The notes beneath the pieces were generated by a model. That model ran no database searches, was not told where the DNA came from, and worked only from the letters and a program-made list of their open reading frames with translations. Source: Oculina patagonica (taxonomy: Eukaryota). Taken from it: a stretch of DNA of 64,000 nucleotides. This document shows, piece after piece, positions 18,201 to 48,454 of this stretch (position 1 is the first letter of the stretch; each line of letters starts with the position of its first letter). The DNA lies in contig NC_135765.1 of NCBI RefSeq assembly GCF_052425735.1, positions 6,262,001 to 6,326,000 on the forward strand. The letters are read 5' to 3'. The position numbers and the translations under genes were made by a program.

Positions 18201-21200
18201 CCTGGAAAAATGAAATTCTAAAATTCCATGACTTTCCAGGTTTTCCATGACCCGTACAAACCCTGAAAGAACGAAACAAAAGGACCCTAGTTGTGAAATG
18301 CTCGGTTTCATTAGCATATACTTGTAGAGCCCTAACACGGCTCATAATACCGAGGGTAAATAAAGTTTCAGTTTTAGTGTCACAGCAAAGACCGTTGTCA
18401 GGGGCTTAACGCAAGCCTTTTTTGTAGATGGTCTTAGTAAGTATTCGTATTTGTCTTAGTGTTATTTTTGTTATGATTATTTCTTAGGTAACTTAAACAC
18501 GACCACATCAGCTATGCTGTAAATTTATCGTGTCTAAATAAAAGATATATTATTATATTATTATTAATCGTCGTGTGTTCGTAGGAGATGTCCCGCACTT
18601 GACGAGACCATAGATCGCCTGTGTAGGAGACTAGCTGAACGCGTGATTTCACGATACAATTACAAGCTGCTTGTACCTCAAACCTTAGTAAAACAGGCTC
18701 AGCTTTACTTGCGACAAAGGGAGATCTGAGATTTGAGCCGAAAAATTAATACTACTGTGGTTTGTGTCTGTGTGTTCCCTTTGATTGGTCGATTAAGAAC
18801 TGTCACGCGCATGACACAGAGAAACGCCTGTTTTCGTTGCGCTGACCTAAACAACGCACAAAACATCAATTACCTTCCTGACATGATTTTGAGGCACTCA
18901 TCCAGGAGCCTTTCGTCACTCTCAAAAAATCCTCTGGTGTCCACCATTCGAATTTTTTTCTGCACGTAGTATTCCTCAAGGTGAATGGTACCTTCCTTTC
19001 CTGTGCCTTGCTCAAAGGCGTTCTGAGGTTCTCCAATAGCTCGCTGTAATGTGCCTTGTAAAGGTAATACAAAACAAGAAGGTCTTAATGCTGGGTGGAA
19101 AAAGTGAAAGTGGGAACCAAAGCAAACACAAATTTCTTTCGACACTTAAGTGAAAATCGCTCTAATGATTAACACTTTGGCTAATCACAAAATAACGCAA
19201 TAAAGCCGTCAGAGGTCGAAGCAAAGTACAGTCATGCAACCGGTGCAAAGTGCGGGAAAACGTGCATAAGCCAAGTCACTTAATGTTAAATTGGTTTGGT
19301 ATAGGAGCACCTTGCACTTCGAAAACCGTTGTAACACGTCTGTTTGTATGCATCTACGATTTTGAGCGCCATACTATAGGTATAGGTATTTTATTTAAAG
19401 TCGGAAACGTTGGGAGTGGTTGCCCAATCTCCCGAGCCAGGGGCTCATGTTAAAAACGCACGACTATTTACAATAAAATTAATTACATTACTATTACATT
19501 ATAATCATTAAAAATAGAATTTAAAAAGAGATGCTAATATAAATATAGAATTAAAATATGAAAGCAACTAATCCTAATATTAAAAATTTAAAAGTTTAAG
19601 TTTGCACAAGAAGCATAGCATACTCCAAATAAAAAAACTATACAGGCTTCGAAAACCTGATAACAATCGAAAAACTCCTCTGAGACAGACCTGGGGGAAC
19701 CTTGCTTTACACCAGAGATTTAATAGAAACGTCACTAGCACAGATAGATATCGACCAGGTTTTTTCTTCCCCCACCCCCTCTCACCTAAAACTTCCTCCG
19801 ACTTAACCATCCAAAATACCCCCCTCCCTCTCCTCCCACACCAACCCTGAAATCCGCCAAGTTACGTTAACACATTTCTTTGTAGCTGGGACACGAAATA
19901 TACATGGAAAACCATACGCATTTTTATTACCTTGGGCTTGTCAATTTCACGGGTAATACCCTTACGAAGGAGGAATAAACCTGCCATGCGAATGTTTTAA
20001 TAGGTACCGAGGAAAAAAGGGATATTAGCCTGAGGCACAATGAGAGCACGAGAAATTTTAATCACAAAACACAGAAACCTGTTCTTACCCACAAAACTGG
20101 TTTTCCCTGATCCTGTAGGCCCGATTAGCGCAATACGTAGCAAATCAATGTCGTCCACCTCTAAATCTCGAAAAGATTCTTTCTTAATTCTGGGACAACT
20201 CTGAAAGTCGTAATTCATCAGGTCGCCCTTAAGTTGAAGGAATCGTTCTTCTTCCTTTTGTTTTCTTTCTCTTTCCTCCCTCTCACGTTTTTGACGGTCT
20301 AATTTTCTTCTCTGTTCGTCGTCTTCACTTCTGGTGCGTTCTGCCACTTCACGCAACGCCTGTTGACGATCTCTTTCCATCGCGTCACGCAACTCTCTCA
20401 TTCGCTGGTCATTCTCCTCTCGGGCTCTCTGTTCACCTTGAGCGCGTGCATTGCGATCTGTTCTGTCCACCGTTTCATAGTTCTGTAATTAAAGACAGAC
20501 AAACAAGCAAAACCAAGGGATCGTGTTTGAAACAAATTTCAGAGGATTTGGAAACAATTTTATTTAGAAAACGAATCCGAATAAAAGAGAAGGAAGCTAG
20601 AGTAGAAAATATAGATACACCTTGACATTGTAGCTAGCTAGGTAATAATTTTAATTTAGTGATTTACTCGAAAACGGAACTTTATACTAAGCTTTTAAAA
20701 AATGAGGCTGGCATGACTTCACAACAAACCGATTAAATGAAAAACATTTTTCTCAATTTTTTGAATACAGTCAACTCTCTCTTAACGGACACCTCTATAA
20801 GAAGGACACCTCCATAAGACGGACACCTGGTGATGGTCCCTGCCGTTTTTCAGTCATTTTACTGTAACCAAACTCCCTATAAGACCGACGGACACCTCTC
20901 TAAGGCGGACAACGGACACTTTGAAATGATTAACGGACACTTGAGAAGTGTTTTTTTATCATGTTTTATTAGTGAAAATACTTCCAAACTTCTCAACGTT
21001 AGTCACTGTACCAAGGATACGTGTATACCAAGCTTACTAACCACAAACAATGACGCTTTAACGGATTACTTCTTTACTTACGTATATGGACACTAAAGAG
21101 GTCATTCTCTACTTACAGTATTACAGTTTGTAGAAGCTCTCAACTTTTGCTTTAAAAAGTAAATACGGTCCTTTTATTATTTTAGTCTTGTTGCAGTTAG

Positions 21201-22974
21201 CAAAGGTTTGTTGCATTGTGCAAAGGTTTAGCTTTATTATCTCAGAATTACTGGTGTCATGTGACCTCGACTCTCTATTAGGCGGACACCTCTCTAAGAC
21301 GGACAGCTGCGGCCGGTCCCGAAGGTGTCCGTCTTAGAGAGAGTTGACTGTATTCAAACCCTCATGAAATCCCACACGCACAGAAAACGTCACTGGAATC
21401 GAATTCAGTGACATAACCTATTTTGTCACAGTCTTTCTATTTCCTGTACCCATTTTTCAGTAATGACAATTTTATGAACTAAAACTGGCAACATCGATCA
21501 CTGAGCGCGCATCGCGTGACTTTCATTTACGCTTGCGTGACTGAAGAGTAAGGAAAATATAAACTATAAAGAGCTACTAAAATATTGGAGTTATTATTAA
21601 TGCCAGAAAACGGTAAATCAATAAAGAGTAAATTTTGTATTTAACACCAAAAAAAAAACACGTCAGCGCTCAAAATAAATTAATTACAAATTCTTGGTTT
21701 TCATGTTACGTCATAAAATTCTGAAATCAAAATTCACTAGGCCTACTACATTTTCGTTGTTATTAGACGTATAAAGACAAGCTAAAAATATATCTTTTTG
21801 CAAATTTCCAGATCGATAGTGTCATTCGTTTTTTAAACAGAGCATTTTGAATATTTGAGTTCTCCGTCGTATGTGACATCAAGCTTGTTTAAAAAAAAGG
21901 CCTTTCCTTTCCATTTTCAGCAGATTGAACATTTCAGATACAATAAATGGTGTTTATGTGAAACTGTACTAGCTCATGAGCCAAAGATTGCCGCTGTTGT
22001 AAACAGAATTGAGTTCCAGATGGTTTCTCTGACATCACGGCGGCCATATTTGTGTACCTCGGAAGGACACAGTTATGGCATCTCCATACTAAGCTTTATA
22101 AATTTGCGTGGAAAGGTTCGGCAAATAACTCGCGAACGGTACACCGCACAGACCTGAAACTTGGAGAAATTGTTTATCTATTTATCGTCTATAATATTTG
22201 AAATTATAGCTTCAGTTCTATAGTTGAATGGTTTCGAATTTATTTTTTGATTGCGTGACAGTGAAATCCAGCAATTGCAAATGATCGAACAAGTTCCAGG
22301 AATTCGTTACAACCGGAAGACGCGTTACCCGGAAAAGCCAAGAAACCTAAAGAGGAAGACTTTCGGTTTCATTTACCTACTGCAGTACAAATGTCACGTT
22401 CTTTTCCTTTATTATTCCTTTAATTTATTTTATCTAGTGAAAGGGATTAAAAATACCGTGACTTTGCGTTTTATTGTCGAGGATGATTGCGAAATGTACT
22501 TTGTACAGTTCTAATGAAATAAGAAACTCTAAGGTCAACAACATCTTTTCGCTTGATGTAATATATTTCGGTCTCAGACGAAAGCTCTTGTATTCTCTAT
22601 TCATCCGAGAATTCGCCGATTTGCCCGCCGCTTTAAAACGCTTGTGTTTCTGTGACTGAGTGAATGAAACATATGCAGAAACGCACTTTGCATTATAAAA
22701 TTAATAGTTTCGATGTCAACTTGTAAAGCACGACACACTACATTTGTTATTGGTGCAAATTGCCGATATTCCTCTTAATTTTGCTTGGCTTTCTTGTGAA
22801 ATCATGTTCGACTTCGTGCATACGTTTAAAACACAAGTTTCACTTTCAAACGAAGCGAACACTCGTGCACGCTTGTTTGCAGTGTTTGGACAAAAAGAAA
22901 CCAAGAATAAGCTGGAATTTATATAATTATTCAAATTTTCGTGTACTCACGATTTTGGAATCGCCGTTTCCCAT
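15234..22974 (-). CDS. G2: IFI44-family GTPase with N-myristoylation-type start MGNGDSK, coiled coil and SAM-like C-terminus, 433 aa; close paralog of G1
   Basis: Exons 22951-22974, 20089-20482, 18874-19054, 17673-17875, 16245-16520, 15234-15457; exons 2-6 have the same lengths as in G1 (394/181/203/276/224); 1302 nt open. Confidence 0.9.
15740..15950 (-). mobile_element. Second tRNA-derived SINE family
   Basis: Minus-strand tRNA-like head (tggtttagggcgctggtattgtaatccggaggtccccggttcaag) followed by a non-tRNA body. Confidence 0.65.
16030..16165 (-). mobile_element. SINE 5' fragment (11298-11600 family)
   Basis: gtggagagaaagggcactatgagagtaaagtg...ctaaccatcaagccaccgcgcctcc matches the full copy. 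Confidence 0.75.
17245..17488. mobile_element. MITE with imperfect TIRs
   Basis: cagggccgggttgttcgaag...taacccaggatt versus aatcctggattagc...tttgaacaaccgggcccag. Confidence 0.65.
20768..21350. mobile_element. Tc1/mariner (pogo-like) MITE
   Basis: TIRs CAGTCAACTCTCTC...GAGAGAGTTGACTG, TA on both sides, internal repeated GGACACC; absent from the paralogous G1 intron. Confidence 0.85.
22294..22370. promoter_or_regulatory. G2 intron-1 motif cluster: GAS TTCCAGGAA (22294-22302), CCGGAA cores, ISRE-like ACTTTCGGTTTC (22359-22370)
   Basis: Same motifs and order as in G1 intron 1. Confidence 0.6.
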
Positions 22975-25943: not shown

Positions 25944-28900
25944 CTAAGTGCCTAGGTGTTTTATCTCCTCTTCCAAGCCTATCTTCATGCCAATGGACAA
26001 TTTCAGTTCTGACTTAATTTCGTTCCATAGTTTCTTGAGGACCTTCACAATGGTGATATCCTTTTTGCGCAGGTCTTCCAGCAGAGCTTTCTTTCTTCCC
26101 TGGTTGGTCCAGTTGTACTTCTTTTCAAGACGAGCAAGGAACTGCTCAACACTCTCCGCGCCACTGGGAACTAGTAGGAAGATTCAAAAATAAGGGAGCA
26201 CTATTAATGGCTGCGCATTCACAAGATCTTAATTGCTGCATAATTTAATTAAGCCATTGATATTTTATTCCAGTGTAACACTTAAAATCTGAGTTTAAAC
26301 TCGGGCAAGTGTTCCGAGCTTGAAGATCAACCTCCTTTCCTCGCGTTGTCTTCTTGCTATCTCGCCCTTAACCTGACTTACCACAGACACACATATCACT
26401 GATCTTGTTGAGGTCGGGAAGGTTGAAGTGTTCGGCAACAGGGAATCCGCCTCTTTGGTGGGCAGGGGTTCTGATGGAAGACTTTCAAAAAACGGAGGTG
26501 TTCACCGAAACGGTCCACAACCCTCCTAGGCTCCGTCAAGGAAGATTGAGCCGAATAGCTGGGCCAAAGACCTAATAGTCCTTGGGAGCCCTGGGCTGGG
26601 ACAGGCATTGAATTGCCGGCTTGCTAGTGGGGTGGGCAAAGTCAAGTTTTGCCACTTTCAACAGACTTTGCCAGTCACAAGAATATCGTGGTATTGTTGC
26701 CATGATTAGACTACGAACAGTCCCGATTTTTTTCGCAGAGTCCGTCGGGCTTGAAGCGAAATTTGTTTTGGAAGAGTCCGTCGAGCGTGATGCGAAAAAA
26801 TAAAAAATGTCATTTTGCCGCTCAATAATTGAGCTGCCTAGCTGCCACATTGTTGCAGCTAGGCAGCTCAATTCTGTTGCCCCAAAATGACAATCATGGC
26901 ATAGACTACGAGAAGTCCCTATTTTTTCACAGAGTCCGTCGAGCTTGAAGCGAAAACTTTTTTTCGAAGAGTTTTTTTCGAAGATAGGGACTTCTCGTAG
27001 TCTATGCCATGATTGTCATTTTGGGGCAACAGAATTGAGCTACCTAGCTTAGATGTGATCGGGGACGACAATGCACACGGACTCCACTAGCCCTCCGAGG
27101 CTAGCTAGGGGCTCTCAGGAGGAGGGAGGCTGGGTGCCAGTGAATTGGAGGCCTTTCTGTCAGAGTAACCCCCCCCCCCCCCACCCGGGCAGTCTACTGG
27201 ATACCTTTTGCTAAAACAGGGCAGAAATATAAATATAAATTTCTTTGAAAACATTTAATGCTCAGCAAACAGCAATAAGTTCGTACCGTGTCCTATCACA
27301 GGGGGCCCAACTGTAAGATATAACTGTAACAAGTATTCCATTCAAAATTTATGATTGAAAGCGAATTGAGTCCCTTTGGTCAGGCGAATTTTAAGTGAAC
27401 TAAAGCGCATGTCGCGAGAAAAGAGAAAGATATTTTTTCTGACGCGACGGTTATAAAACATATAATCCTGCAGAGGATTTATGGTATAAATCTGCTTACT
27501 GTTGTCCAGTTTCCAACGTGCCTAAATTAATCTGCATCTGCGATGATGCAAATGGCTATAAAAATGCTTCTAATGATATTAAAACCACAACATATTAAAT
27601 CCCTTCTAAAAGCATCTTTATACAAAAAGAATATCGATAGAAAACTACAATACTTACCTCCAGTCATGGCTTTCCTTTCCATCTGATTCTTCTCTCGCCG
27701 CTTGCTAAATTGTATGAACCTTTCAGCGGAGACCAGAGCGGAATCCAGAATGTGTAGAGCGGCTCGATCCACTTCATAGGACATCATTTCATGCTCATCA
27801 TATGAGGTGTAAATCGTAATAAAGTGTGTACTCTGGTTAGAACTGCCGGTTGTCCTCTGCGCCATTTTTAAAACTGCATCCTGGTCCTTCTTCAAAAGTG
27901 TCCGTTTATCCAGGCAGGTAATCGCTGTCACGGGAGCATAACCTTAAAGTAAAGAAAAAGGAATCAGTCACAGGACAATAAGCTGTAAAATGAGGTAAAA
28001 AGTTATCAGCCACAAGTGAAAGGTTAGCAGTGACCGGAACATAACTGTGAAGTATTAAATGGAGTATGGGCACCATGTTGCGCGACGTCAACGTCGTACG
28101 TACGTCGTCGTACGTAGGATGCACGCGCCCGCAACCCATACCACTAGCCACGATGATCGTGAAAAATCAAATTCATAGTTCTCTTATTTCTGTGCATGCA
28201 TGGTTCTCCTATTTCTATGGTTATGGGGCTCCGCTCTGCGTCCCTTCGGGCCGCTCGGGAGCTTCGCTAGAAGGGAAATGGTAAATGCTTTCACAGGAGT
28301 ATGGAATGTAACAGGTTATCAGAAATACAAAGCGCACAGTGACACGACAGGTTGGGCCCAGACTAAGAAAAGTTTTAAGTCAATGTGCAGATAGTTTTCT
28401 TACCTCACAAGAAAAATCACCGTGTCTGCATTTGGCGTCTAAGACATTAATGTCCTAATTAGAAGTAAAGCTGTTAAATGAATTTAACCAGTAGCTGGGT
28501 AAATATCTTTATTACCTTCCTTGTTAAGGTGCTCTCTCAAGGTTTGCAGTTTGTCTCTGTAGCTGCCGTCCATCAAGCACGGATCGTTTCCGTTCAGAAC
28601 AAAAATCACAGCGTGTACGTAATCTGACAAAACTGAATCTATTCTTATTGTGGTGTTTGCCATTTTATCTCCTTCCTTGTCATAATTTCGAACAATTGCA
28701 TCTCCTGGACGAAGTCTGTAAAAAGAAAAAAATAAGAAAAAGAAATAGATGAAAACAGCGTGTAGGTCGTTTTCCAACACAAGAAAAATCGCTGTGTCTG
28801 CATTCATTGTGGACTTAAATGTTTCAATAAGAAGCAAAGCTGTGACATGGATTTCACTTTTGGGGTTAACATGTTCCATGTTATTTTCTTATGTTTATAT

Positions 28901-31900
28901 ATTTTTCAAGTTGATGACACAAACACTCCACAATACAATACTTACAAAGAACTTTATACGGATCATTACTTACAATGTAATAATTTATTCTACAATAGAC
29001 TTTCACAATACATCATAACCTCTACTTAAAAGAAAAGAAGAAAAACGCATTACCTATTTACGGTACATAATACAACACGTTATATCCTTGACAAAAAACA
29101 ACAAATTCAGAATTGCTTTTTAAATAGAACTTATAATTTCTAGCCTCTCTCCTCCGCAGAGGTTCTATGGGGTGTTTGTTGTGGAAATCCGCTGGGTAAG
29201 GTGAGTGTAGGCGCAGAAGAAGAGAGATCCATTCACTCCGCTTTCTTGCGCCAGCACTCACTTTGCTCAGCCGATTCTCCCCACACCGAAAACCCCTATC
29301 GGGAGCCTCTTTGAAGGAGAGAGATTATCTGGAATTATTAAAAACTAGCAATGGTATATCGCAATTCCTGAGTTTTGATTGGTTAACAGGCAATGGTTTA
29401 TGAGCTCATATACCATTGACCACAAATATGGTAGCCGATACTCGTCAACGAAAACAGCTGGGGAACTCAAATATTGCAATTTCTTGGGCGTTTTAATCGC
29501 GCTTGTTGGATATGAGATAGTTATAGCCAACTCGGCGCTATGCGCCTCGTTGGCTATCTACCATCTCATATCCAACGCGCGCTCGTGGAATAATTGTTAA
29601 AGATAACTTCGAGTGAAGTGCAACACTAATTACCTTCCCGACAAAATATCTAACAGCTCGTCCTCCAGCTGCTCATCGCTCAAAAAGAATCCTCTGGTGT
29701 CCACCATTCGTATTTTTTTCTGTAGGTAGTGCTCTTCAAGAACAATGCTACCTTCCAAGCGTTCCAGGTCCGGATCCATGGCAGTCTGGGGTTCTTTAAG
29801 AGCTCTCTGTAAAGTACCTTTTAAAGGCAGTGAGAATGAAGAATGGTTAAAAGAATTTGCAATGGACGGTCAAGAAAAAAGTACTTCAAGCTGGCTCCGG
29901 CGGTATAAGATACTACGGCCTGAAGGAAACTCTTTTTTTTACCGGTGCTTGCTTGAACCTTGATCAATGAAGTATTTATGGTCATGTTACTAGTTATGCT
30001 TCTAAAATAAGGAAGCTAATAGCTGTTGGTCCAGTTATTTAAATTCTGTTCAGTTACCTATGAGATTTGTTTTCCCGGCACCTGCAGGCCCTATTACGGC
30101 AACGCGTATCAAATCGATGTCGTCGACAGCAAGATATTCGAAAGCCACCTCCTTAATTTTTGGGCACTTCTGAAAGTCGTAATTCATCAGCTCGTGTCTA
30201 AGTTGAAACAGTCCTTCGTCTTCCTTTGCTGACTAGAAAAATAAAATGATTGTGTTGAAACAAAACTGAACCAATTAAGGACAGATTAAGTTCACTGAAC
30301 TTTATGGAAAAGGAACTACCAAAAGCTTGTTCAACATTAAGTACAATGAACGTATTAACATTAATGCCAAATAAATCCAGCTTTTACTATAAACTGAAAA
30401 CAAATACGAAAAAAAACTAATGCAAAGAAGAGAAAGACATTTTATAGCAGATGGCATGGCAATATTATCTGCGGTCTCACCTGATCTATACCTAAGAAGA
30501 ACTCTCTGCATTTTCCATACTCATCCGGTGAAATTGTAGTTGTAAGTTTCAGCTCATCAAGCCCAAGCTTTTTCAAAACTTGAGCTGTTACGAGTGTTTC
30601 TTCGGCAACTTCATTTAGATGGCCGCTGCTGTAATCTTTCCACAGTCTTTCAAGGATTTCCAATGAGCTACATGTCACTGTTATCAACAAACTTCCTACG
30701 TTGTAGTTTTTAACGCCAACTCCAAGCTGAACTTTCAAGTACTGCAGTAATAGATCAAAGGAGTCCTTAAACGACAAAATAACAGTCCAGATGGTGAGCT
30801 CTGCGACTGGAGGATTCTGGGGATTTTCTTGATGATGTTCCTCTACCCCAATGCTAATAAGAACTGAACCTGTAAACGCGAAAGAACACATCTTCATTCA
30901 TAATCATTGCAAATTGTCTTTTATGACCTTTAAAGGAGCTATGTCAGGAGGATTTGGCAAATTAATTTTAAGTCTAGGTTGTTTTGAAATTAGTGGTAGG
31001 CAACTTACCCATAAGAAACATTATCTTTGAACATCTTAAGGAAGATATAACCTTAATTTGCGGAAAGAAATCAATCTACGGCTATAAATGTCGACTTTGT
31101 TTTCGAGACCTGCGGAAACAACTTGAGAAAGTAAGGCTTACTTTTTCAAGTTGCAATATGTTACTATCCTACCCATCCGCAGTCACATCGTTGACGGTCA
31201 ACGATGCTCGTTAACAGTTTCAGTGCTCTAGTATAGCAATTTTTAATTAAAATGGACTATTATTTTAAGGTTTCCTGCGACACAAATATACATTTTGACT
31301 GTTTAAAAAAGTGGGTATCCGCATTAGACTCCACTGCAAGCTAGTTCAGTTCAATACCGAGAATACGAATATGGTCTATTAAAAGCAGCAAGCGTAAAAA
31401 ATGCATTTGATAACAATTCTCAACAGAAAAAAATGCTTTGGCGGTAGTACTATTGGTGTGCTCTTGGATAGTAAATTAGAAAACACCAATTCAAGAAGGA
31501 AATTGCAGTCATTGCAAGCAGAGAGGTAATAACGTCATGTTAAAAGAAACCAAACTAACTACAACAGTTTCAAGCACTTTCCATCTGTCATATTTTGATG
31601 GCTCAGTGCTACAAACATTTTGCAGTTACTGCTGCAAAAATGGTATCAAACAAATGCCCGATAATTGTGATTATTTATGACGTCACTAATAACCATAGCA
31701 ACGGTAAAATCTTTAAAAACCACCCTTAATTTTACATTAAAGTGCTTATAACTCAAACCGAGTCCGATGATCCCCATTTTTGTCTCGTGTTACGTCGCGG
31801 TCACGTCGTGAACGACGTGACCGTGACGTAACACGAGATTATCCGAGGGGACTTGGTAGCTCAGGATAGTGCTTTGTGTAAGACCTCTCGTAAGGTAACG

Positions 31901-34900
31901 AAGTGATAAAGTAGCAAGGAAACAAGGTAAGAAATAGACATATTTACATAGATACATTTTGCTGATAAGATGCATCGGGATGCTGTTCTTCGTATTGCGC
32001 GTTTTCTCTTGTCGAGTTTTAAACGTGCTTATTTACACGTGTGAGACATGGTGTAAATGTTTGGATTACTAAGGTATGTGAATAATGTAATATATTACAT
32101 GAAGTATCATCTTTAGTAATACCGCCAAATCTGATAAGGAGATTTTATCTCACATATGTTGCTTAAATAGGTAGTTTTTTACATGGAAAATGAATTTATA
32201 TTTACGGTAGGTTTGTGTTTTGATATTATATTTGCGGTGGGTATTGTTAAAGTATGCGGCTGGCTGAAAAGCTGTTGTTAAATTTCTGTTTGCGTTACAA
32301 GAAAGCCATTTTGGTGCGTGTTAGGGTCGAGGGTTGTTGAGGTCAGAGCAGTTTTCAGATATGTCAAATGATGTGTCAAAAGGAGAATATTAAGTGAAGT
32401 TACCACGCAAACAAAAATATTGATGTGGTATCTCATCTTCGGATTTGTTCGTTTCTTTAAACTTTATTTAGTAAAGAATAGGAAGGGCGTATTGTGAATA
32501 GTGTAGAAACAGAATAAAAGGATTAAGGGAAGTGCGATTATCGTTATCTGAGAAACAGGAAATTAATTTGCTTTGCTTTGTTAATTGTATACGCTTTCCA
32601 GAACGTGATATGATATTTTGAAGACACTAAGGTCACAAAGTCAAATTCATAATTCCTTTTTGTTTGTTTTTCTTAGGGCCGGGTCGCACTAAAAAAAAAT
32701 TTGGAAGAATTTGTTTACTTTGCGGTGAAAATCTATCAACACGCGAGATTTTTAAGTGCGACCTCCACTTAAAAAAAAAGGCGAACCGATTTTCCAAAAT
32801 TTTGTCTTTAATAACAAAGGAAGCCGTCTCCAGTGATAACAGAACCTGTCAGGGAAATGACATTGAAGGTCATGATCGCACGCAATCACAAAGCGCGGGA
32901 ACTTCGCTAGAACACTCGATCATGGATGGAGGTGGCTTTTTTCTCAGTTCAACACCATTTTATCCGGTTACTTTTTTGATCAGCAGCAGCATCAGCAACA
33001 GCAGTTTGGTCCTTTTATGAATGAACTGCATTCGCAGTTAAACGTGGGTGAAGGCAGTCAAAGCAGGCCAGGGAGCGCATCGAGCGATATAACGAGCTCC
33101 CCGACGAGTCCCGTTGCTGTTGCAAGTACATCTACAGCATCTTCTCCCGAATCCGGACCGGCAAAGAGAACTTACGAAAAATGGGTCCGACGATGATCAG
33201 AAATGCTAATTCGTATTTGGGCTGATAATTTCGATCGCCTGAAGAGAAGAGAAGCACGAAAGGTCTGGTATGAAATGAGGCGAGCACTGAACTCGAAATT
33301 TGGCACGAAGAGGACCAGGGATAAAGTCTTTTAAGCGTCAAGCAATCAAATTCATTTCCGGTTGTCACTTGCGAAGCCGGACCAAGATATATTAAGTGAT
33401 AATACACAATACATCTTGCAACAGTATCAACAAAATGCAAGTAATCAACGTTTTCACGGAACATATATCTTGTCCTTCCACGGCGTAAATTTCGAGAGTT
33501 TAAAGCGTATTTTACAAATAGACTTGAGCAAAAACAAACTAAACTAGCAAAACATGTGGCAAAGAAGTGTGAAACAAACAGGAAACCACGCAGCGCAGAC
33601 TATAAATGCAATGACCTCTAGACATTTCCTTGGCCACAATCTTACGGCTCTATTTAATACATAATGCCTCCAGATAAAACAGATCCCCATTAGAAAGAAG
33701 TGAGAAGCAAATTACGTCGAAAAACCTTCTCAGGAAACTAATTTGCTTTGCTTTTCACCACTTCGGCTTTAGATTTCGAGTGTAGTGTCAGGTGACGTTC
33801 TTGCTAAACAAAGACTGAATGTTCGGGCAACATCTGTCGAAGATACTGTGTAGTGGGTAGTCGGGGGGTAGTGTACAATCGGGTCGAGGGTTGTTGGCGC
33901 CAGAGCACTTTTCAGATATGTCAAATGATGTGTCAAAAGGAGAATATTAAGTGAAGTTATCATGAAAACAGAAAAATTGAAGTGGTATCTCATTTTGCGT
34001 TTTGGTAGATTGTTTAAACTTCATTCAGGCCATAATAGGAAAGCAGTATATTGAATACGCGGTAGATACAGAATAAAACCATTAAGGGAAGTGCGAATAT
34101 CGTTATCTGCGAAACGGGAAACAAATTTGCTTTGTTCAGTGTACTTATGTCTTACTAATTAGGTAGCTGTATCAACAAGTTGCGCTGGAAGTTCTAAAAA
34201 GCGTATTGAGAATTAATAATTTAATCAAGGTTATTATATGTGACTGAGGGCTTTTCATGCACAGTTCTAGTTTATTTTCACTGAGAATAATTTTAGTTGC
34301 AAGGTGAGTGAACGGTAGGGTAACATGTTTGTGCAGAGGTGTATATAGAACACTTCTTTTACATATTGGAAGCTATCATCGGTCTTTAAGCGGCAGAGCA
34401 GAAGTAGTTGTTGAATATTGACCTTAATTTTTTCATATGCTCACTAGTGGCGCACGACGGAGTTGTGATTTTTGAACAAGTTATGTAAAATAGAATATTT
34501 ATTTAAAGGACGATTTCTAGAACGTTATATGACATTTTGAAGACACTAAGTCATCAGAATGGGGCTTTGTCAGGAGCCATTACTAGTAATGCGCTCCTGG
34601 CAAATGTACATGTAATTGTAGAAAAAAACTCAACCAAGTGACTTGCCTGAAAATTACATGTAAGTCTCTCAGTTCCATTTACTTACATTGTAATATGAGC
34701 ATTACAGACGGAAGCATTACAGTACAATCCATTTATAATACTGTACATGTAAATACAACTATCATTTTGCCATTTAAATATGCAGATTTTACACAGCTGA
34801 GTGCTCCTGGCTCTGTATATTTCAGAAGTAGGTTAAAAGCTTCAGTAGATTACAAATTGCAAGATTTCATGATTCCTATTCCTATGAACTTGGTAATAAC

Positions 34901-36915
34901 TGCATAAAACAAATACGAGGAGCAACGAGTCTTTCTTCCAATCCGCCAGATTTCCACATTTCCACACTTCCGGAGATAGACTGTTAACTGTTTTGCAGTC
35001 TATGATTGTGGTGGAAATGGAGACTGTTTTCGTTTTTCGAAGTGTTAGTCATCAGATCTTTAACTCGGTAGCAAGTCATTTGCTGCCCTCAGGGCCGATG
35101 GCGAATAGGGAAGTAGGTAATTAAGTATGTAATTAGCAAATCATTTGATAGTGCGTTTTGCAGTTGTTGAATACCTTAGAAATCATTGCGAAGATTTTGT
35201 TGAGTTTTTTAGAAGGACAGTTGGACAGGTTTGACTATTTGAGTAGAATGTGAAGAAAGGGCACATGGTGCGATGCTGGTATAGCACAAGCTGTTGCAAA
35301 TGTCAGCTGTGTATTCAAATGCTTGAGAATGAAATTTGAGAATTAATATTGTAGAATCCGGAGATGGTTTTTCTGAGCTTATATGATTGTTAGCAACGGG
35401 TGCTACTTTACTGATCTGTAACACGAGACAGCCCAACGGGCACTTTGATTCATTATGGAATAACTCTTTTGTAAAGTTGACAAAATATATCCGGAGCGGT
35501 TTTAGAGCAACCTTAAACATTTCAATATTTCAGGAGGCTCTGAAATGAGGGTCACTGAACACGTTTTTGATACATAAGCACTTAAAAAAGAAATTTAGGG
35601 TGTATTAACAGGTTATACTGTTGCTATGGCAACCAGTGAAGTCATCATTTGTTTGATATCAGTATTTGTTAAGGATGGGCCGATACTGGTTTTTCAAAAC
35701 GATACGATATCGATACGATATTTGCCTTTTTTCTCGATATCGATCTCGATATCGATATTATGACGTCATTTCCATCCTGATGTCATTGGTTTGTCACGTG
35801 ACCATACAAAGGACAGACCTGGCATTATAAATGTTAGCCAAGAATGCTGATTTTGGTCTTTTTGTTTCACTGTTGCATCAGCAATGTGTGGACATAAAGT
35901 CAAGGCAAGAAAAATTCAATTATTGACAAGAACATCAATATTTCTTTGAGCAAAATTGTATTTTTCAACCGCAGGTGCTGACCAGAAGACCGCAGGCTCA
36001 GGTCACGTGTGTAGTATCGAAAGCGTATCGAAAGTGCGATATTTTTCGAAAGTATCGATACTTTTCAAAATTGTCAAAATATCGATGTATCGAACATTTG
36101 GTATCGAGTATCGGCCCATCCTTAGTATTTGTAGTACTGACCTATCAGAGTATGAGAGCTACATGTGTAGCTGGAAACTGTTGTGAGCCCCCTTAAGACT
36201 TTGAGAACTTACCTAGTCTTTGGTTGAGCTGTTGGATTAGACAATTCTGATCTCTAACTTGATCTCTTAGCTGCTCAACTGTATCTTTGACTTCCATGTC
36301 GTTCTTGTACCATAACTGAAGTTCATCCATGTATCTCTGAGCCTGTGTTGTCAGAGGATCATGTAGCAATTCATCAATAGATATCTCCCATTCATCTCTC
36401 TTTACTTGACTAATAGATCCAGCAATCCGTAAGAGAGCCTCGCTGATTTCTCTCCAGAGATTACCGAACTCAGAGTCCGTTATTTCCATTGTCGTGTTGT
36501 GACCGTAAACAGAATTACGGTAGAATTTAATTCGCGCCAAATCTGCTTCAAAACTATAGTCTGTACTGTTTGGTAAATTGTCCCATTTGGTAGAAGGCTC
36601 TGTCAGATTGCATATTGTTCTTAACAATCTGAAAATTAGAGTGATGTCGAAATCTGTGGACTTACCAAACGTACCAGGGGAAGGGGGAGGGTAGAGGCAA
36701 TCCCACATTGGATTGGTAAGTTTTGCTCCCTTCAACTGGGTTTGTATAGCGGGATCACCTAACTTTAATGGCAGATCAGTCGGTGAGTGAAAAGAATCAA
36801 ACTTTTCTCGTAAAAGTTGGACACCACCACACATCAGAAGTCTTGTTAATCGCTGAAAATTTTCTTTTCCCTTCGTTGAACGCAATGCTTTTTCTGCGTC
36901 TGTAAGGGACGCCAT
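25944..36915 (-). CDS. G3: DZIP3-like HEPN + TRADD-N-like + IFI44-family GTPase + SAM-like fusion, 720 aa
   Basis: Exons 36213-36915, 30481-30869, 30058-30232, 29634-29817, 28516-28715, 27658-27942, 25944-26170; GT-AG, phases 1/0/1/2/1/1, 2163 nt open. Walker A GPAGAGKTN, DTRG, HAVIFV, ITCLD. Confidence 0.8.
26857..27049. repeat. 66-bp near-perfect inverted repeat (MITE-like hairpin)
   Basis: Arms 26857-26922 and 26984-27049 with one mismatch; a related partial unit lies just upstream (~26700-26850). Confidence 0.8.
30481..30869 (-). other. TRADD-N-like domain exon of G3
   Basis: GSLLITVTCSSLEILERLWKDYSSGHLNEVAEETLV signature, paralogous to 45271-45680. Confidence 0.7.
31560..36196. mobile_element. 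Composite nested insertion in G3 intron (Kolobok-like outer arms, ~3.7 kb cargo)
   Basis: Left arm ~31560-31780 is an imperfect reverse complement of ~35540-35660 plus 36130-36196, which ends ...gagcccccTTAA; the equivalent G4 intron is only ~650 nt. Confidence 0.55.
35670..36124. mobile_element. hAT-like MITE
   Basis: TIR TAAGGATGGGCCGATAC...GTATCGGCCCATCCTTA, 8-bp TSD GTATTTGT (35662-35669, 36125-36132), internal CGATAC/ATCGAT repeats. Confidence 0.85.
36213..36915 (-). other. DZIP3/hRUL138-like HEPN domain exon of G3
   Basis: ENFQRLTRLL...FDITLIFRLLRTIC...DLARIKFYRNSVYGH...WREISEALLRI; Rx4-6H motif RNSVYGH at 36499-36519. Confidence 0.8.
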
Positions 36916-38071
36916 GTCACGCCACACTTGGACAAACGAGAGAGACGATTTTAGTCCTAGAAACGTCAGGAGAGTAAAAAATAATTATTTTAAAACCTGT
37001 ATGTAAATTTTAACTGTATAAGCTGTTCATTAGTTTATAAAAACAATGTTTCTTTTTTTGTTTGGGAATCGTTTAACATATGTCACTTTTTCATGTTTAC
37101 TTAGTCTGCATCGCGTGACGTCTACAGATTTACTTTCATGTGCGTGACTTATATGTAGGTTTTGCCAGATTTTCAAATCTTGCTTTTCAATAGCGTTGAA
37201 ACAAAAAATAGCTGATTAACACAACTTTGAAAAATACATTATTCTCGATAGCAGATCAATAGAGACATTAAAATTTAATAATTGCAACTTAGAAAGGCAA
37301 TTTCAACCCTGACAGTTCCGCAACTTCTAGGAATTTGCACAGCGACAGAAAAGTGTTTTCCGGAATCGTATCAAACTTATCAGTTATCAGTTGTTTGAGG
37401 GAGGATCTAATTTTCTTTCTGCTTTATATATTTTTCTCTCCGTCCCTCTGGTTTGCTATGAGAAGCACCTGGAAAGTCTCCTGAAAGTATATGAATTTAC
37501 GAAATAAAGGTCATGCGGAGGTTAATCATCATTTTAATAAAATGTTCGTATCTGTCTACGGCGTAATGGCTGTTTATTGTGCGCACTGTCGATTTAGTTT
37601 CAAATTTATTAAACTGTATTCCACACGCTTCCGTCCAGAATCAGATCATTTTGGGAAATTTAAAAGAATCGATGGCTTTTATATGGCAAACGGATACAGA
37701 AGGCGGAGGAAAGAATTTTAACAGCACTGCCCGCAGCACTGCTATCATAAAACAAATGTTATTTTATATGAGCATTAAAGTGTGCATTTAAGAAAATACA
37801 AATTGACGCCACAATTCCCTTTTGAGCGTTGCAATAACTTCATACTTCTGTCACTTACTAAAATTTAACGTTGTGTTAGTCTTTTTGTAAAAATTTCAGA
37901 TCGTCAATCGTTTCGTGACTCGGGGATTTAGCGGTACAAAAAACAAACAGTCTAGCAAATGCATATTTGCAACCAACATCAATAGATACGTTCCTGTGCA
38001 TGCTAAATTCGACAACTCAAGGCGATGCACGATCGCCATACAAGCTACCAAGTTAACAGGCAGGTACTCAC

Positions 38072-38095
38072 GTTTTTAGATTCGAAGTTTCCCAT
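38072..38095 (-). CDS. Upstream micro-exon of G3, MGNFESKN (myristoylation-type); uORF or alternative first coding exon
   Basis: ATG GGA AAC TTC GAA TCT AAA AAC|gtgagtac, homologous to G2 exon 1; ETS site CCGGAAGTG at 38172-38180 upstream. Confidence 0.72.
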
Positions 38096-39234
38096 TGGAG
38101 AACAAATACGTCCTAGGCTGTTCAGTCTTCTGTTCGTGTTCCTCGCCGCCGTCGCTCGATTCCAGAAAAAGCCGGAAGTGCATGCAAGCGAGGCTTAATT
38201 AGAATTCAGCATGGCGTGACGACATCTTGGGTTGAACTGTTTGTACTCGGCAACAGCCGAATTTAAGAAATGTAAAGATAGAAAAATTAAACGTCAATAA
38301 GCTAAAAGTCGGACTGAAAACGCCGCCACAGAAACTAATCAAAACGGAAATGAAAACAAACTTCGCAGAGAAAATTTAAGGTGTGTAAAGAAACTCTTCT
38401 ATGGAGGCTAAAAATAAACTGAATATTCTTAGAATTCTTAGAAAGCCCATATCAACCGATGGAAAACAATGGGTTAATGCTTGATAGAACGTATATGGTT
38501 TCGGCTGGGGGCGGAAGGGGGGGAAGCTGGAAGCAATATTCCGAGAATGCGTAGAAGGGGAAACGAAGGCCGGGGGGCCGGGGATTTGAATTTGAACTTG
38601 GCACTTTTTAAAATGCACTTTTGCAATCAAATACTTTAATAAACAAGTGTCACGCAGCGTACGAAGATTTATTTCTTCGAATACTAAGCTGTCATCAACT
38701 TAATCAGGACCGGGGATCAGGAGGGAAGAGTACTGAAAAAAGCTGCATTTCTCCCCGCTCTCCCTCCCTCCGGCCTTTCGAATCGGTAAATCTTGTCAAG
38801 AGAAATGAAGGAATACGTATGTGTCAGATATTTATTTACGACTAAAGCCTACAATTAAAAAGAAACACAACGGTGGCTTATGTCTTGATTGTAGCTTTAG
38901 TTCAAAGTGAAAACACGTCACGCTTATTCAATGAGTCAGATGTCTCACACTTTAGTATTCATGCCGGTCAAAGACGGGAAGAAAGACACTTGTCAAGCAT
39001 GAAACGTGATTATGCTACTGTATTACTTATAAAAACACATTGACCTTTAGGAAGTTTTCACTTTTCTGACAGGGTGAAATAAGCATACAATCGTTACAAA
39101 TGAAAATGTACGGTGCACTGATAAGCAGTGAGAAAAGCCGTAAAACGAGGTTAGCTTTGTGCGAGAGCGTTTCACTTGGGTCACAGAAAAGTGTCCGTTG
39201 TTGGCATAAACTGGTGTTAACTGCGTTGTCCGTA

Positions 39235-42200: not shown

Positions 42201-45200
42201 AACGTTTTTGTTGCTTTTGTTGCTTCGATAGACACCAGTTCTGTCGATACTGTGTTAGAAATAGTTCAACTTTCTCGATTTACTTCCGTTCTGGGAAATT
42301 TACTTCCGCTTAGACCTGAGAGCATGTGCAATAAAAACCGGAAGACCAAGGTTCTACCTGAAATCGACCTGAAATTGATCTGATCAATTCCAGTTTCCCA
42401 AAGTCCGTCCCGTACCGCTGACCGACATAGACGGACTCTGGGCTCGAGATTGATGGAAATGACTATAGCCGACTATTGCCCCAGTCCTTTCTCTTTCCGT
42501 CACTTTCCGTCGTTTCAGTCCTTTATCAACAGGCTCTTCCCTTTCCCTATTCCTTTTTCTTCCGGCTGTCTTTTCGCCCCATTCTCGCAGGAGAGCCTGC
42601 TGACAGGTTAATAACATTGACGATCATTTCAATCAACTGATGCGAAATAGTCGTAGCCTTTGATTGAGTATTCGGCGTGACCTTAGTATAGTTCCTGTTC
42701 TGCGGGACTTACATATTGTATACACAGTCTTAAAATCTTAATGAAATTCTTAGATAAAAAGAAGCTACCTTCTTCAGTCTTGTTCAACTCGAAGAATCCT
42801 CGCGTGTCGTATAGCGTGATTTGGTTCCCAGGAAGAACACAAGTCTCCAAAATCTTCGTTCCTTCTTTTCCCATGCTCTGAGTGACAGCCGGCTCCGAAT
42901 CCAGATCCAAGGACTGAAAGATGGTGTTAATCAGCGCTGATTTTCCAGAGCCAGTCATACCAAAGAGCGCGATATTCAAGCTACAGCCGTCCATCTCGCT
43001 ATCCAAGGCATCATGAAAATCCTCGTAAGTCCCGACCTTGTAATCAAGTATTCTACTACACAGCTGCGAAATGTCATCTTCTATAAAAATAGAGATTTAC
43101 GGAAAATCAAGGTTGGGTTAAATCTCCTTCAAGTTGGTTATCCCAAGTTACGCTATTAATCAAATGTTGTTAGTTAGCTCAGTTGGTAGAGCGCCGGACT
43201 GTCTAGCGGTAGGTCTTGGGCCGGACCGGACCAAAACTCAGGGTCTTAAAATAATTGAGGAGAATTCGAACATGCTGCCTTTGCAATGACATCTGCAAAT
43301 GATTAGATGTTCTAGTCTTCTCGGATAAGGACGATATTAAACCGTAGGCCCCGTCTCCTGCATCTTCAGTGTTATGGTCAGCAGGGGCCGTTAAAGAACC
43401 CACACACTTATTATATCGCAAAGAGTAGGGCACGGAGTTCTCGGTGTTCTGGTCCGGCCTATTCACATGTATCCATGGGTTGGGTGGTGGGACGAGATCA
43501 TATATGGACGAATAGCGCCTGCCAAAGGCGCCTAATATGCTGATGTCCGATCTCGTCTAGTAACTCTAACTGTGAAGTGCATTGAGCTTTGTAACTGCGC
43601 TATACGTTAACCACGATTAAATAAGTATATATTAACCGAAATTTTTAAAAGATGTAAAGGTTGCGTAAAGCTGCTTAGATAGACGTTTATTTACACCGCA
43701 GTAAAGTTATATTTATTTTGTGCCTGCTTTCGTTTGATTCCAACCTCAGCTATTCTAAAGTGTAACGATCGGAAATGGATACTTGCTTACGAGCATGACG
43801 AGTGTATGCAATTCTTTAGGTGTGACCAACGGAAACTGATTTTAAAAGTTTGCTTACTTCTAACGCTAAAACAATATCACTATGAAATTGAACAATAATC
43901 CCGTATAGTCACACAAAGTCAGGGCCCGATTGCATAAGGTAGGATTTAGAACAACTGTTCTCTATTTTGGTAACAGCATTGTGTTTCTCGTAAACTCTTT
44001 AATCCACCTTCGGCTGATTTATCCATAATATTGTGCAACAAAACGTTCGGGGACTCAGGGAATGGTTGCAGAACATTCCACTTAATCTTAAGTTGCTTTA
44101 TGCAACCGGGGCCCAGGCACCTGAAATTTACCAATTTCATCATCGGAAATCGTAAGCTTTGCACTACGTCTTGGTTTCCCAGACTTCCATTCTTGTTGCA
44201 GTTGTCGTCCAGTCTTACGTGAAGTGCTGGCTTTTGCCCCGTCAAATGCAAACAAAAAACGGAAATACACAACAAGGTTTATACCATACTATTAAATGTT
44301 TTTAAAGTCGTTTCTAATAGCTCAATGCAAGTATTACAATCCTCGGGATCAAGGTTGCCTAAAATTGTTTAGTCATCGGTTTTGATTCCCTTGAATGAAG
44401 TACAAGAAGTAATTCTAGTCCCCCCTGGATGGAACGCTAGTTTATTGTAGCATTTTGTCAGGTTACTCTGACACGTTGCTGGTACCCACTCATGCTACTG
44501 TGTGGAGATGTGCACTGTGAGAGTAAACTGTCTGTCAACACAAGAGGACCAAAGGGTTTGAATTTCCTCTTTCCTACAAGAGCCAATGTACTAACTATTT
44601 AACAACTATTCACCAAAGTTTAAGTGGCTAGTGGTGGATATTATTATTATTTGCTTTAGTGTATACTAAAACAGTAAGATGGTATAACCCGAAGAGGGTG
44701 ATTTTTCACTAATTTATTCCTGCAACAATTACAATTTTCTAGCGCACGTTGCTCGGAGCCGGTAAATAACAAAGGATGTTCGGAGTTTGAGTAGCCAATC
44801 AGCGCGCGCCAAAAACGCTATCCACTGTTTTATTATATACTATAAACTATTGCACATAGCATAACTAAAGTCTTTTTTTTACAAATAAATGTGCAGATCT
44901 AGAGTCTCAATCCTAGTTTAGATACCTGGTGGTTTTGAAGCTTTAATTTCGCGGCCTTCTTTTTTTTCTTTTCCACCACTGCCCATAGTTAACTCCACAT
45001 CATCCAGATTGGTCGGTTCTTGCAGAGAACGTTCTTGTTTCTTCACCAGTTTACATTGAAAACAACAGAATAAAAATTTGTTATAAAAAACATAGGTAGT
45101 TTAAGCTGGAATTTGCATTATTTTAGTACGTTTGCTTTTACACATTTAAAAATACATCAAGTAAATAAAAACTTACGACTAAAAATACTACTATAAGCAT

Positions 45201-47102
45201 TATTATAATTAAGATTCATCTATCTCTCGAATAAATTTAAACTACATGTCACTCTATATTATCCAGTTACCTTATCTGCATTCCCTAAGAAGAACTCTTT
45301 GCACTTTCTGTACTCATCCTCTAAAATTGTAGTTTTCAGTTTCAGCTCATCAAGCCCAAGCTCTTCCAAAACTTGAGATGTTGCGAGTGTTTGTTCGGCA
45401 ACTTTATTTAGATGACCGCTACTGTAATCTTGCCACAGACCTTCAAGGATTTGCAGCGAGCTGCATGTCACAGTTACCAATACACTTCCTAAGTTGTAGC
45501 TTTCAACACCGAGTCCAAGCTGCGCTTTCAAGTACTGTAGAAATACCTTTAACGACCGCTCCTTAATAACATTCCAGAAGGTAAGCTTCGGGACCTTTGG
45601 CATTGGAGGACCATGGCGATATCCTTGATGATGATAATGATGTACCTCCACCACGATGGTAATACGAACTGGTTGAGAATCTGTACAATCAAAAGAACAC
45701 ATTCTCAGTCACAATTTATTGCAAAATATCTTACATTACCTTATGAACTGATCAGATTTAAATCATTTAACCACCTTTATAAAAGAGCCCTCGGCTTCAA
45801 GATCATTTTGAACGGCGCTATGAAGCAACGGCCAAAGCTTTGTCTGCGTGCAAAAACATTCAGAAATAGCCGGGTCCTCTCGATAGAATTACGAAACTGA
45901 GATTGAGTATGAGTATGACTTTGGAATATCAATCCAGTCACTCCCAGAGCTCTCGTTTCTCCCTGTTGCTGACCGGTTGAACTATCGATGCGAGATTGGT
46001 GTGCAATTAAGCGATAATCGAAAGCATAAGCACCAAGTTTAAGAACTTGTACTCTTACTCAATCTCGTTCTCCGATCTACAGGTAAGCAAGGTCTTACAA
46101 TTGAGAGCAGTAAGAGTGCTTTAGACCCTCAAGATAAAAGGCATTTGATAGAAGTCTCAGAAAAAAGAACTTTCTTGGCCGGCAGCCTCATTGGTTAGCT
46201 CTTGGATAGTAAATAAGAAAACATCAATTCAAGATGGAAATCGCAAGCAGAGGGGTAATGACTCCATGCTGTAAGGTGACACCAAACTAACAGTGCAATC
46301 AAAGCAATAAAGATTTCGAAAGCTTACCTTGTCTTTGCTGAAGCTGTTGCAGCTGATCTCTGATATCTGTGTTAACTTGTTGGAGCTGATCTGTGACATC
46401 TACATAAACTTGTTGGAGCTGAGCTCTGATATCTGTGTTGACTTGTTGGAGTTGATTTCCTACTTGTTCTACTGCATCTTTGACTTCCATGTCGTTCTTG
46501 TACCATAACTGAAGTTCATCCACATATCTCTGTGCCTCAGTTGTTAGAGGATCACGCAGCAATTTATCAATGGACTTCATCCATTCAACTCTCTTTGCTG
46601 GACTGATTGACTCAGCAATTCGTAAGAGAGCCTCGCTGATATCTGTCCAGAAATTACCGAACGCAGAGTCCGTAATTTCCATTGTCGTGTTGTGACCGTA
46701 AATGGAATTGCGGTAGAATTTTATTCGCGCCAAATCTGCTTCAAGACTGTAGTCTGTACTGTTTGGTAAATTGTCCCAGCCGGTAGGGGGCTCTGTCAGA
46801 TTGCATATTGTTCTTAGCAATCTGAAAGTTAAGGTGATATCGAAATCGGCAGACTTGCCAAACGTACCAGGGGAAGGGTAGAGGCTATCCCACTCTGGTT
46901 TAGAAATTCTCGCTCTTCTTAATTGGGTTTGTATAGCAGGATCACCAAGCTTTAATGGCAGATCAGTGGGTGAGTGAAAAGAATCAAACATTTCTCGTAA
47001 AAGCCGGACACCTCCACACATCAAAAGTCTTGTCAGTCGCTGAAAATTTTCTTTTCCCTTCGTTGAACGAAAGGCATCTTCTGCGTCTGTTGGTGATGCC
47101 AT
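39235..47102 (-). CDS. G4: DZIP3-like HEPN + Q-rich coiled coil + TRADD-N-like + divergent IFI44-family GTPase, no SAM-like tail, ~718 aa
   Basis: Exons 46328-47102, 45271-45680, 44926-45040 (weaker acceptor), 42769-43080, 40776-41012, 39235-39542; 2157 nt open. RNSIYGH at 46692-46712; NIALFGMTGSGKSA, KEGT, YDTRGFF, ILDRIHVVLWVIKAND, VITFDD, FIANS, LKCGERSI. The 3' end could alternatively splice onward. Confidence 0.75.
40309..40757. mobile_element. MITE flanked by TTAA
   Basis: ttaaAGAGGGGGACATTGGGG...CCCCAATGTCCCCCCTTttaa. Confidence 0.7.
41163..42452. mobile_element. 1.29-kb non-autonomous Mutator-like element in a G4 intron
   Basis: TIR CAATCTCGAGCCCAGAGT...ACTCTGGGCTCGAGATTG; 9-bp TSD ATGGAAATG (41154-41162, 42453-42461). 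Confidence 0.85.
43170..43600 (+). mobile_element. tRNA-derived SINE (third family)
   Basis: ttagctcagttggtagagcgccggactg head without a complete cloverleaf, followed by a ~350-nt body. Confidence 0.65.
45271..45680 (-). other. TRADD-N-like domain exon of G4
   Basis: GSVLVTVTCSSLQILEGLWQDYSSGHLNKVAEQTL; same phase-1 start and phase-0 end as the G3 exon. Confidence 0.7.
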
Positions 47103-48430: not shown

Positions 48431-48454
48431 GATTTTAGATTCGCAGTTTCCCAT
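48431..48454 (-). CDS. Upstream micro-exon of G4, MGNCESKI (myristoylation, possible Cys4 palmitoylation); uORF or alternative first coding exon
   Basis: ATG GGA AAC TGC GAA TCT AAA ATC|gtgagtac; ETS CCGGAAGTG at 48541-48549 upstream. Confidence 0.72.

Follow-up and report, generated by a model that had tools for sequence, protein, structure and literature searches.

A HEPN-TRADD-N module probably stranded the start codon of its host GTPase as a relic upstream open reading frame in the coral Oculina patagonica

Introduction

Here we analyse a window of 64,000 nucleotides (nt) from the coral Oculina patagonica (NCBI RefSeq assembly GCF_052425735.1, contig NC_135765.1, positions 6,262,001 to 6,326,000). 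The window, whose own numbering is used throughout, holds a cluster of tandem GTPase genes, here called G1 to G4, and all features under study lie on its minus strand. Homologs of these GTPases carry the name 'interferon-induced protein 44-like', which NCBI assigns automatically. Two of the genes, G3 and G4, open with a micro-exon of eight codons (MGNFESKN and MGNCESKI), which is followed by a HEPN_DZIP3 exon, a TRADD-like_N exon and the exons of the GTPase body. We show here that RNA of G4 joins the micro-exon to the HEPN exon, where it opens a nine-codon upstream open reading frame (uORF), that the corresponding exon is the coding start of related GTPases without the module, and that the micro-exon decays in HEPN-bearing copies of other corals. 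The probable explanation is that a HEPN-TRADD-N module in the first intron stranded the start codon of the host GTPase. On this explanation the uORF is an evolutionary leftover rather than a selected device, and as a uORF it is of the ordinary kind.

Results

The micro-exon of G4 is spliced to the HEPN exon

The RNA considered here consists of contigs of four runs (X1, X23, X24 and X27, from three studies) on window positions 42680-48670, i.e. on G4 only. Assembled contigs of this kind drop rare isoforms, and the joints cited are those listed. The exons of G4 are:

48431..48454, minus strand: exon-1 micro-ORF MGNCESKI; RNA contigs extend the exon to at least about 48536, with coverage at 48479-48504
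46328..47144, minus strand: HEPN_DZIP3 exon (Pfam, 7e-40); RNA joints 48431>47144 and 46328>45680 in 4/4 runs
45271..45680, minus strand: TRADD-like_N exon, 410 nt (Pfam; RNA joints)
44926..45040, minus strand: linker exon (KQERSLQEP...), phase-0 start, the proposed skipping target; RNA joints 45271>45040 and 44926>44230 in X1 and X27
44132..44230, minus strand: exon after the linker (RNA joints)
from 43080, minus strand: P-loop exon; joint 44132>43080 in X1, near-variants in the other runs

All G4 joints are minus-strand GT-AG joints and the joined reading frame is open throughout. The micro-exon reads ATG GGA AAC TGC GAA TCT AAA ATC (48454..48431) and is followed by the donor GTGAGT. Behind the acceptor (...tttttaag) the HEPN exon begins with GAC TAA, the uORF ends at 47139-47144, and the main ATG stands at 47102 after a spacer of 36 nt. 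Mature G4 mRNA thus carries the uORF MGNCESKID-stop ahead of the HEPN AUG in all four runs. The coding part of the HEPN exon and the TRADD-N exon (775+410=1185 nt) make up whole codons with a phase 0 end, and splicing in silico confirms that the micro-exon is also in frame with the linker exon at 45040.

An earlier note on this DNA had read such an arrangement in G3 and G4 as a regulated switch: if the HEPN and TRADD-N exons are skipped, a myristoylated GTPase results (364 amino acids in G3), and if they are included, a HEPN form restrained by the uORF. Part of this proposal stands, since the micro-exon is the transcribed first exon of G4 and the uORF is present in the mature mRNA; 47144 and 45040, the two exon starts on which it relied, are both borne out by RNA joints. 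The skipping itself finds no such support. The inclusion joint 48431>47144 was recovered in 4/4 runs and three studies, while the skip joint 48431>45040 is absent among the joints listed in the four runs, which are contig data that hide rare isoforms. We regard the switch as very unlikely, although its frame, ATG and myristoylation pattern are intact in G3, G4 and the near-identical coral copy L015 described below.

The linkage seen in RNA also bears on the idea that intron 1 houses an independent HEPN-TRADD-N gene driven by a promoter of its own, or that another acceptor fuses the MGN peptide in frame to HEPN. Some deposited Oculina models (P0013 and P0049) do consist of HEPN and TRADD-N only, and in G4 the upstream ATG and the HEPN ATG share one frame. 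Against a nested gene, the G4 contigs connect exon 1 with the HEPN, TRADD-N, linker and P-loop exons, and 720-aa (amino acid) and 758-aa models or mRNAs run from HEPN into the GTPase. Intron 1 of G4 has no RNA coverage beside the HEPN exon, upstream of its acceptor, so that no internal promoter is seen there. Against a fusion, two in-frame TAAs lie between the two ATGs of G4, and G3 has them in different frames (41 nt). Of the 120 HEPN homologs examined, all begin at or slightly upstream of the MAS..DAE site and none begins with MGN. We reject both forms of this idea, which are contradicted by the RNA linkage, the intervening stops and the homolog starts, and we rate the chance that either holds as close to negligible. 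In Logan contigs L001-L010 (HEPN proteins P0024 and P0028), intron-like sequence lies upstream of the acceptor and no splice junction was found. Exact look-ups of P0013 (Oculina) and of P0186, isoform X2 of a Stylophora protein, gave no match.

G3 repeats the anatomy of G4

In G3 the same elements follow each other in the same order:

38096..38206, minus strand: exon-1 leader and putative proximal promoter; 84.5% identical to G4 48431-48560, whose leader is seen in RNA
38072..38095, minus strand: exon-1 micro-ORF MGNFESKN, start of the nine-codon uORF (read directly; identical in L015)
36957..38071, minus strand: intron 1 (GT..AG), homologous to the RNA-removed G4 intron 47145-48430
36213..36956, minus strand: HEPN_DZIP3 exon with RNSVYGH (Rx5H) (Pfam, 1.8e-39; borders rebuild P0297)
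30481..30869, minus strand: TRADD-like_N exon, 389 nt (Pfam, 3.2e-07)
30058..30232, minus strand: P-loop exon (SAKEDEG...GPAGAGKT), phase-0 start, the proposed skipping target; homologous to the 3' part of G2 exon 2 (75.6% nt identity)
25944..29817, minus strand: remaining coding sequence, in exons 29817-29634, 28715-28516, 27942-27658 and 26170-25944 (the last with the stop)

The micro-exon reads ATG GGA AAC TTC GAA TCT AAA AAC (38095..38072), again followed by the donor GTGAGT, and the HEPN exon starts at 36956 behind the acceptor ...tttctag, again with GAC TAA (uORF end 36951-36956). The HEPN ATG lies at 36913-36915, 35 nt from the uORF stop. An in-frame stop ahead of the main ORF is thus found in both genes; that the uORF AUG precedes the main AUG in the spliced transcript is seen in RNA for G4 and follows by homology for G3, which we infer to be spliced in the same way. 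The coordinates and phase of both micro-exons, both acceptors with their GAC-TAA, the nine-codon uORF and its distance of about 35 nt from the HEPN ATG had all been given correctly in the earlier note.

The HEPN exon of G3 contributes 703 nt of coding sequence and ends in phase 1; with the TRADD-N exon the module comprises 1092 nt, equal to 364 codons with a phase 0 end. The acceptor at 30232 (...ttttctag) is followed by TCA GCA AAG, and direct splicing in silico from 38072 to 30232 joins 24 + 1071 nt into an open frame of exactly 364 aa plus stop, as had been claimed. The coding exons (36915-36213, 30869-30481, 30232-30058, 29817-29634, 28715-28516, 27942-27658 and 26170-25944) were set by homology to G4 and by the rebuilding of P0297, a deposited protein of 720 aa that begins with MASLTDAE and is reproduced exactly from the window exons of G3.

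The domains behind the micro-exon are above their Pfam gathering cut-offs. HEPN_DZIP3 (PF18738) scores 135.2 and 136.6 bits in G3 and G4 (cut-off 27) and the translations contain the Rx4-6H motif as RNSVYGH and RNSIYGH, while TRADD-like_N (PF20694), also carried by P0297, reaches 30.5 and 28.7 bits (cut-off 23.7). A P-loop (GxxxxGK[ST]) is present in the GTPase part. A cluster GTPase scores 23.7 bits with the MMR_HSR1 profile (cut-off 21.9); with the IIGP profile it scores 19.6 bits, under the cut-off of 24, and membership of the IIGP or IFI44-like families is not supported by this profile.

Two features of the introns may be added. Intron 2 of G3 (30870-36212) measures 5.3 kb, where L015 has about 1 kb and G4 0.65 kb, and the large insertion is probably a mobile element. 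In 4/4 runs the summed contig depth climbs to about 15,000 over the G4 intron stretches 47880-48279, 43080-43479 and 44680-44879, where loose ends are numerous; these stretches apparently belong to highly expressed repeat families and not to G4.

Module-free genes use the micro-exon as their coding start

The N-myristoylation test used here was the PROSITE-type pattern M-G-{EDRKHPFYW}-x-x-[STAGCN]-{P}. Three matches to the micro-exon pattern occur in the window, where 100 shuffles gave an expectation of 0; besides those of G3 and G4 there is MGNGDSKI at 22951-22974, upstream of G2. Genome-wide, the search returned G2, G3, G4 and one unrelated match only, and exon 1 of the G3 type was found at G3 and G4 alone. 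The module-free genes of the window begin as follows:

22951..22974, minus strand: G2 first coding exon MGNGDSKI, no HEPN module (P0182 reads MGNGDSKI then NYETVD, 100% identical to the window exons)
20089..20482, minus strand: G2 exon 2 (coiled coil and P-loop), phase-0 acceptor; G2 exon 1 splices to 20482 (NYETVDRTD...)
13382..13423, minus strand: G1 first coding exon MAFFRKIFGGSPKI; P0296 (439 aa) begins MAFFRKIFGGSPKI then TYEEVD

G1, G2 and G3 correspond to the Oculina patagonica models ACROYT_G027427, ACROYT_G027428 and ACROYT_G027429 (P0296, P0182 and P0297), and for G1 and G2 the identity to P0296 and P0182 reaches 100% in most exons. Exon junctions of the three models are the same as those derived here, with identity over 720 aa for G3. 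P0297 gives coding sequence only, and the non-coding exon 1 of G3 with its uORF lies outside the model.

The use of this exon as a coding start reaches far beyond the window. Among full-length homologs without the module, at least 20 have an MG start that fits the myristoylation pattern (as a regular expression), and several read MGxxESKI then xYETVD. They come from Pocillopora, Oculina, Acropora, Montipora, Nematostella, Actinia and Branchiostoma and from Logan contigs, some of which are too short to be other than cDNA, e.g. 434 aa on 1368 nt. No alignment is possible between the flanks of the G2 micro-exon and those of its G3 and G4 counterparts; nonetheless the micro-exon and its donor are conserved, with 19/24 bases identical, close to the 75.6% of the coding P-loop exon. 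Because of these MG-starting homologs and this coding-like conservation, the micro-exon is to be seen as the ancestral coding start of a putatively lipid-anchored GTPase. The pattern fits MGNFESK of G3, MGNCESK of G4 and MGNGDSK of the module-free G2, each a predicted N-myristoylation signal.

For the proposed switch, the module-free paralogs show that a protein of the skipped type is a viable family member. They also account for the frame on which the switch was built: exon 1 fits 30232 and 45040 because a module of whole codons sits in an ancestral phase-0 intron. The frame relation is therefore inherited and gives no evidence of design or of evolution for a purpose, and that a 364-aa short form can be encoded is a consequence of the position of the module.

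G1 appears beside G2 as a module-free paralog whose predicted lipid anchor went by a different route: in its exon 1 (MAFFRKIFGGSPKI) an 18-nt in-frame insertion right after ATGG abolishes the MG start, and the frame and the ...SPKI end are kept. Isoforms X1 and X2 of Stylophora LOC111341888 were considered as a long and short pair and rejected, as they are one residue apart and no HEPN or TRADD-N was found within 10 kb upstream.

The micro-exon decays in HEPN-bearing copies of other corals

The earlier note had pointed to retention of the MGNxESK motif in G3 and G4. The motif is indeed present in both, and 22/24 bases of the micro-exon are identical, both differences being nonsynonymous; however, the two genes are about 85% identical across the 5' region including the intron, and the identity of the micro-exon lies within neutral expectation (P=0.28).

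A near-identical counterpart of G3, L015 (assembly GCA_044670265.1), has an identical micro-exon in a promoter and intron 1 that are 97.6% identical. L016 is syntenic with the window and comprises a G2-type gene, a HEPN gene with a G3-type body and a gene starting with MGNGDSKI. Its G3 ortholog has ACG in place of the ATG and a 1-nt insertion; altogether the 24 nt show 4 substitutions and 1 indel, close to the 20-23% seen in the intron. Between G2 and its L016 ortholog there is 1 synonymous difference in 24 bases, against a flank identity of 77-80% (P=0.03). Judged by these substitutions, the micro-exon peptide is under purifying selection in module-free paralogs.

Other HEPN-bearing copies have lost the signal in different ways. 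L019 lacks the micro-exon ATG; L020 keeps the ORF and reads MGNCDPKI, in which proline replaces Ser6 at the critical position 6 and MGNCDPK fails the myristoylation pattern; L022 has a 1-nt insertion of the L024 type and reads MGNARV-stop. These three are counted as HEPN-bearing 5' modules only, with no GTPase exons in the flanks examined. From another coral, L024/L025 provides an independent full-length mRNA contig of a 758-aa HEPN-GTPase with the junction of G4 in its 5' untranslated region (...AAAATC|GACTAA...), and its micro-exon has a 1-nt insertion and reads MGNIGV-stop. Among the HEPN-bearing copies examined, the full signal of ATG, frame and myristoylation pattern is found only in G3, L015 and G4. 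The frame of the proposed short form is thus not conserved in orthologs (L016 and L019 without ATG; L022 and L024 with frameshift stops). The earlier note had itself named neutral decay of the micro-exon as an outcome that would speak against its switch, and decay is what the HEPN-bearing copies of other corals show: a syntenic G3 ortholog without ATG, two copies, one of them an mRNA, with a stop in the micro-exon, and one with Pro6.

A different possibility is that, without any skipping, selection keeps the uORF in this lineage either to brake translation of a potentially toxic HEPN RNase or to trigger nonsense-mediated decay of its mRNA. The uORF is in the mature G4 mRNA, some uORF with varying peptide and stop occurs in 6/8 HEPN-bearing copies including the L024 mRNA, and the spacer to the main AUG is short (35-36 nt). 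On the other hand, peptide, length and stop position are not conserved, and L016 and L019 have lost the upstream ATG but keep an intact HEPN ORF. Loss of the ATG in about half of the copies at about 20% neutral divergence is the expectation for neutral decay. The upstream AUG has C at -3, where module-free genes have A, and the HEPN AUG is strong, which fits bypass of the upstream AUG rather than its use. We consider a selected brake unlikely.

Eight HEPN acceptors were compared (window 36951-36956 and 47139-47144, L016, L019, L020, L021, L022 and L007), and 6/8 have a stop at the second codon past the acceptor (GAC TAA four times, GAT TGA, GAG TGA). This stop persists also where the upstream ATG is gone. 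Within the HEPN exon, the 5' untranslated part is about as conserved as the coding part.

The start contexts differ between the two groups of genes. Position -3 of the exon-1 ATG is A in all module-free genes seen (G2 at 22975-22977 and two L016 genes) and C in the ATG-keeping HEPN copies G3, G4, L020 and L022 (window 38096-38098 and 48455-48457); the C may trace to one ancestral change.

Some of these loci differ further from the window. Between L015:1399-4555 and window 36259-39500 the HEPN exon is only 90.6% identical against the 97.6% of promoter and intron 1, and the L015 product has 316 aa against 240 aa in G3, with QLQQVNTDIR repeats like those of G4; the contrast points to gene conversion or to a rapidly evolving coiled-coil tail in the HEPN exon. 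In L021:6001-7575 (Orbicella faveolata LOC110050366) the HEPN exon is separated by about 550 nt from a P-loop exon of the G4 type (59% identical), with no TRADD-N match between them, and this locus may be a HEPN-GTPase variant without TRADD-N or a partial gene model.

Discussion

We interpret the first exon of G3 and G4 as the stranded start of an older gene. The order of events, as we infer it, would be the following. The ancestral form would have been a GTPase of about 430 aa whose 8-codon exon 1 (MGxxxSKx) was spliced in phase 0 to the coiled-coil and P-loop exon, an arrangement still present in G2. In an ancestor shared by G3 and G4, the HEPN_DZIP3 and TRADD-like_N exons would have come into this phase-0 first intron, bringing with them a short 5' untranslated stretch of their own, an ATG in strong context and a phase-0 end. 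Exon 1 would thereby have turned into a non-coding leader that supplies promoter and transcription start. Its old ATG now opens the nine-codon uORF MGNxESKxD-stop, with the TAA two codons into the HEPN exon and 35-36 nt before the real start, and the main product would be a long HEPN-TRADD-N-GTPase-SAM-like protein (720 aa for G3).

The two start sites bear on what the uORF may do to translation. G stands at +4 of both AUGs, but position -3 is a purine at the HEPN AUG and C at the upstream AUG. Ribosomes might partly use the upstream AUG, translate MGNxESKxD and then either re-initiate 35-36 nt on or miss the HEPN AUG, and with leaky scanning and re-initiation of this kind a modest drop in HEPN translation is probable. 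The weaker context of the upstream AUG in HEPN-bearing copies would fit either relaxation or selection to bypass the old start.

Four points weigh against the relic interpretation. The upstream ATG is retained in 6/8 HEPN-bearing copies examined (G3, L015, G4, L020, L022 and L024, lineages that are not independent), which leaves room for some selection on the uORF. The stop that recurs behind the HEPN acceptor could hint at constraint. ATG, 8-codon frame and myristoylation pattern are intact in G3, G4 and L015, so that by its sequence the short form is still encodable. Finally, the RNA comes from contigs, which drop rare isoforms, and from G4 alone. A minor or inducible skipping transcript in Oculina patagonica, by which one locus would supply a 364-aa GTPase anchored in the membrane as well as a HEPN effector damped by its uORF, thus has a slim chance of existing. 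If it did, it would make a young, lineage-specific immune gene with two outputs, caught before the old start decays.

Short uORFs in eukaryotic 5' leaders are textbook knowledge from yeast GCN4 and mammalian ATF4. As in these ordinary cases, an AUG-initiated ORF in the spliced leader of the coral gene ends tens of nucleotides before the main AUG, and the expected consequences, a cut in translation of the main ORF and possible exposure to nonsense-mediated decay, are alike. Unlike GCN4 and ATF4, the coral locus has a single uORF and no sign of regulated re-initiation. It further differs from ordinary uORFs in that its origin can be traced to a stranded ancestral start, that it spans an exon junction and that it is not conserved in orthologs.

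An N-myristoylated immunity GTPase is known from mouse, where Irga6/IIGP1 is interferon-inducible. Its lipid anchor at an MG... start is shared, by prediction, with the ancestral coral form; however, the likeness is weak and limited to the P-loop region (PDB 1tq4 and 1tqd, E about 0.004). A coiled coil at the N-terminus and a SAM-like exon at the C-terminus set the coral proteins apart, and no kinship is shown beyond the GTPase fold.

Closer relatives of the module have been described at the protein level. In cnidarians, TRADD-N domains of the DEDD2 clade are fused to N-terminal HEPN RNase domains, and the same TRADD-N clade is fused to AIG and GBP GTPases, which was read as shuffling of immune and apoptosis modules (Kaur, Iyer, Burroughs, Aravind 2021, PMC8195603). 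G3 and G4 share with these expansions the order HEPN_DZIP3, TRADD-like_N, GTPase. That work, however, concerns protein architecture, without gene structure, the position of the module in a phase-0 first intron or a relic start codon. New here is the history at the level of the gene, with a traceable and decaying relic of the host start codon; uORFs themselves are commonplace, and what is known of them and of HEPN-TRADD-N proteins is unchanged by this case.

For annotation it follows that MG-starting micro-exons upstream of HEPN exons should not be called coding. The case is also a caution against taking inherited frame compatibility for design. In this locus and its orthologs the ancestral stage (G2), the derived stage (G3 and G4) and the stages of decay are visible side by side. 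If our interpretation holds, the locus documents how exon shuffling created a uORF in a fast-evolving cluster of invertebrate immune genes.

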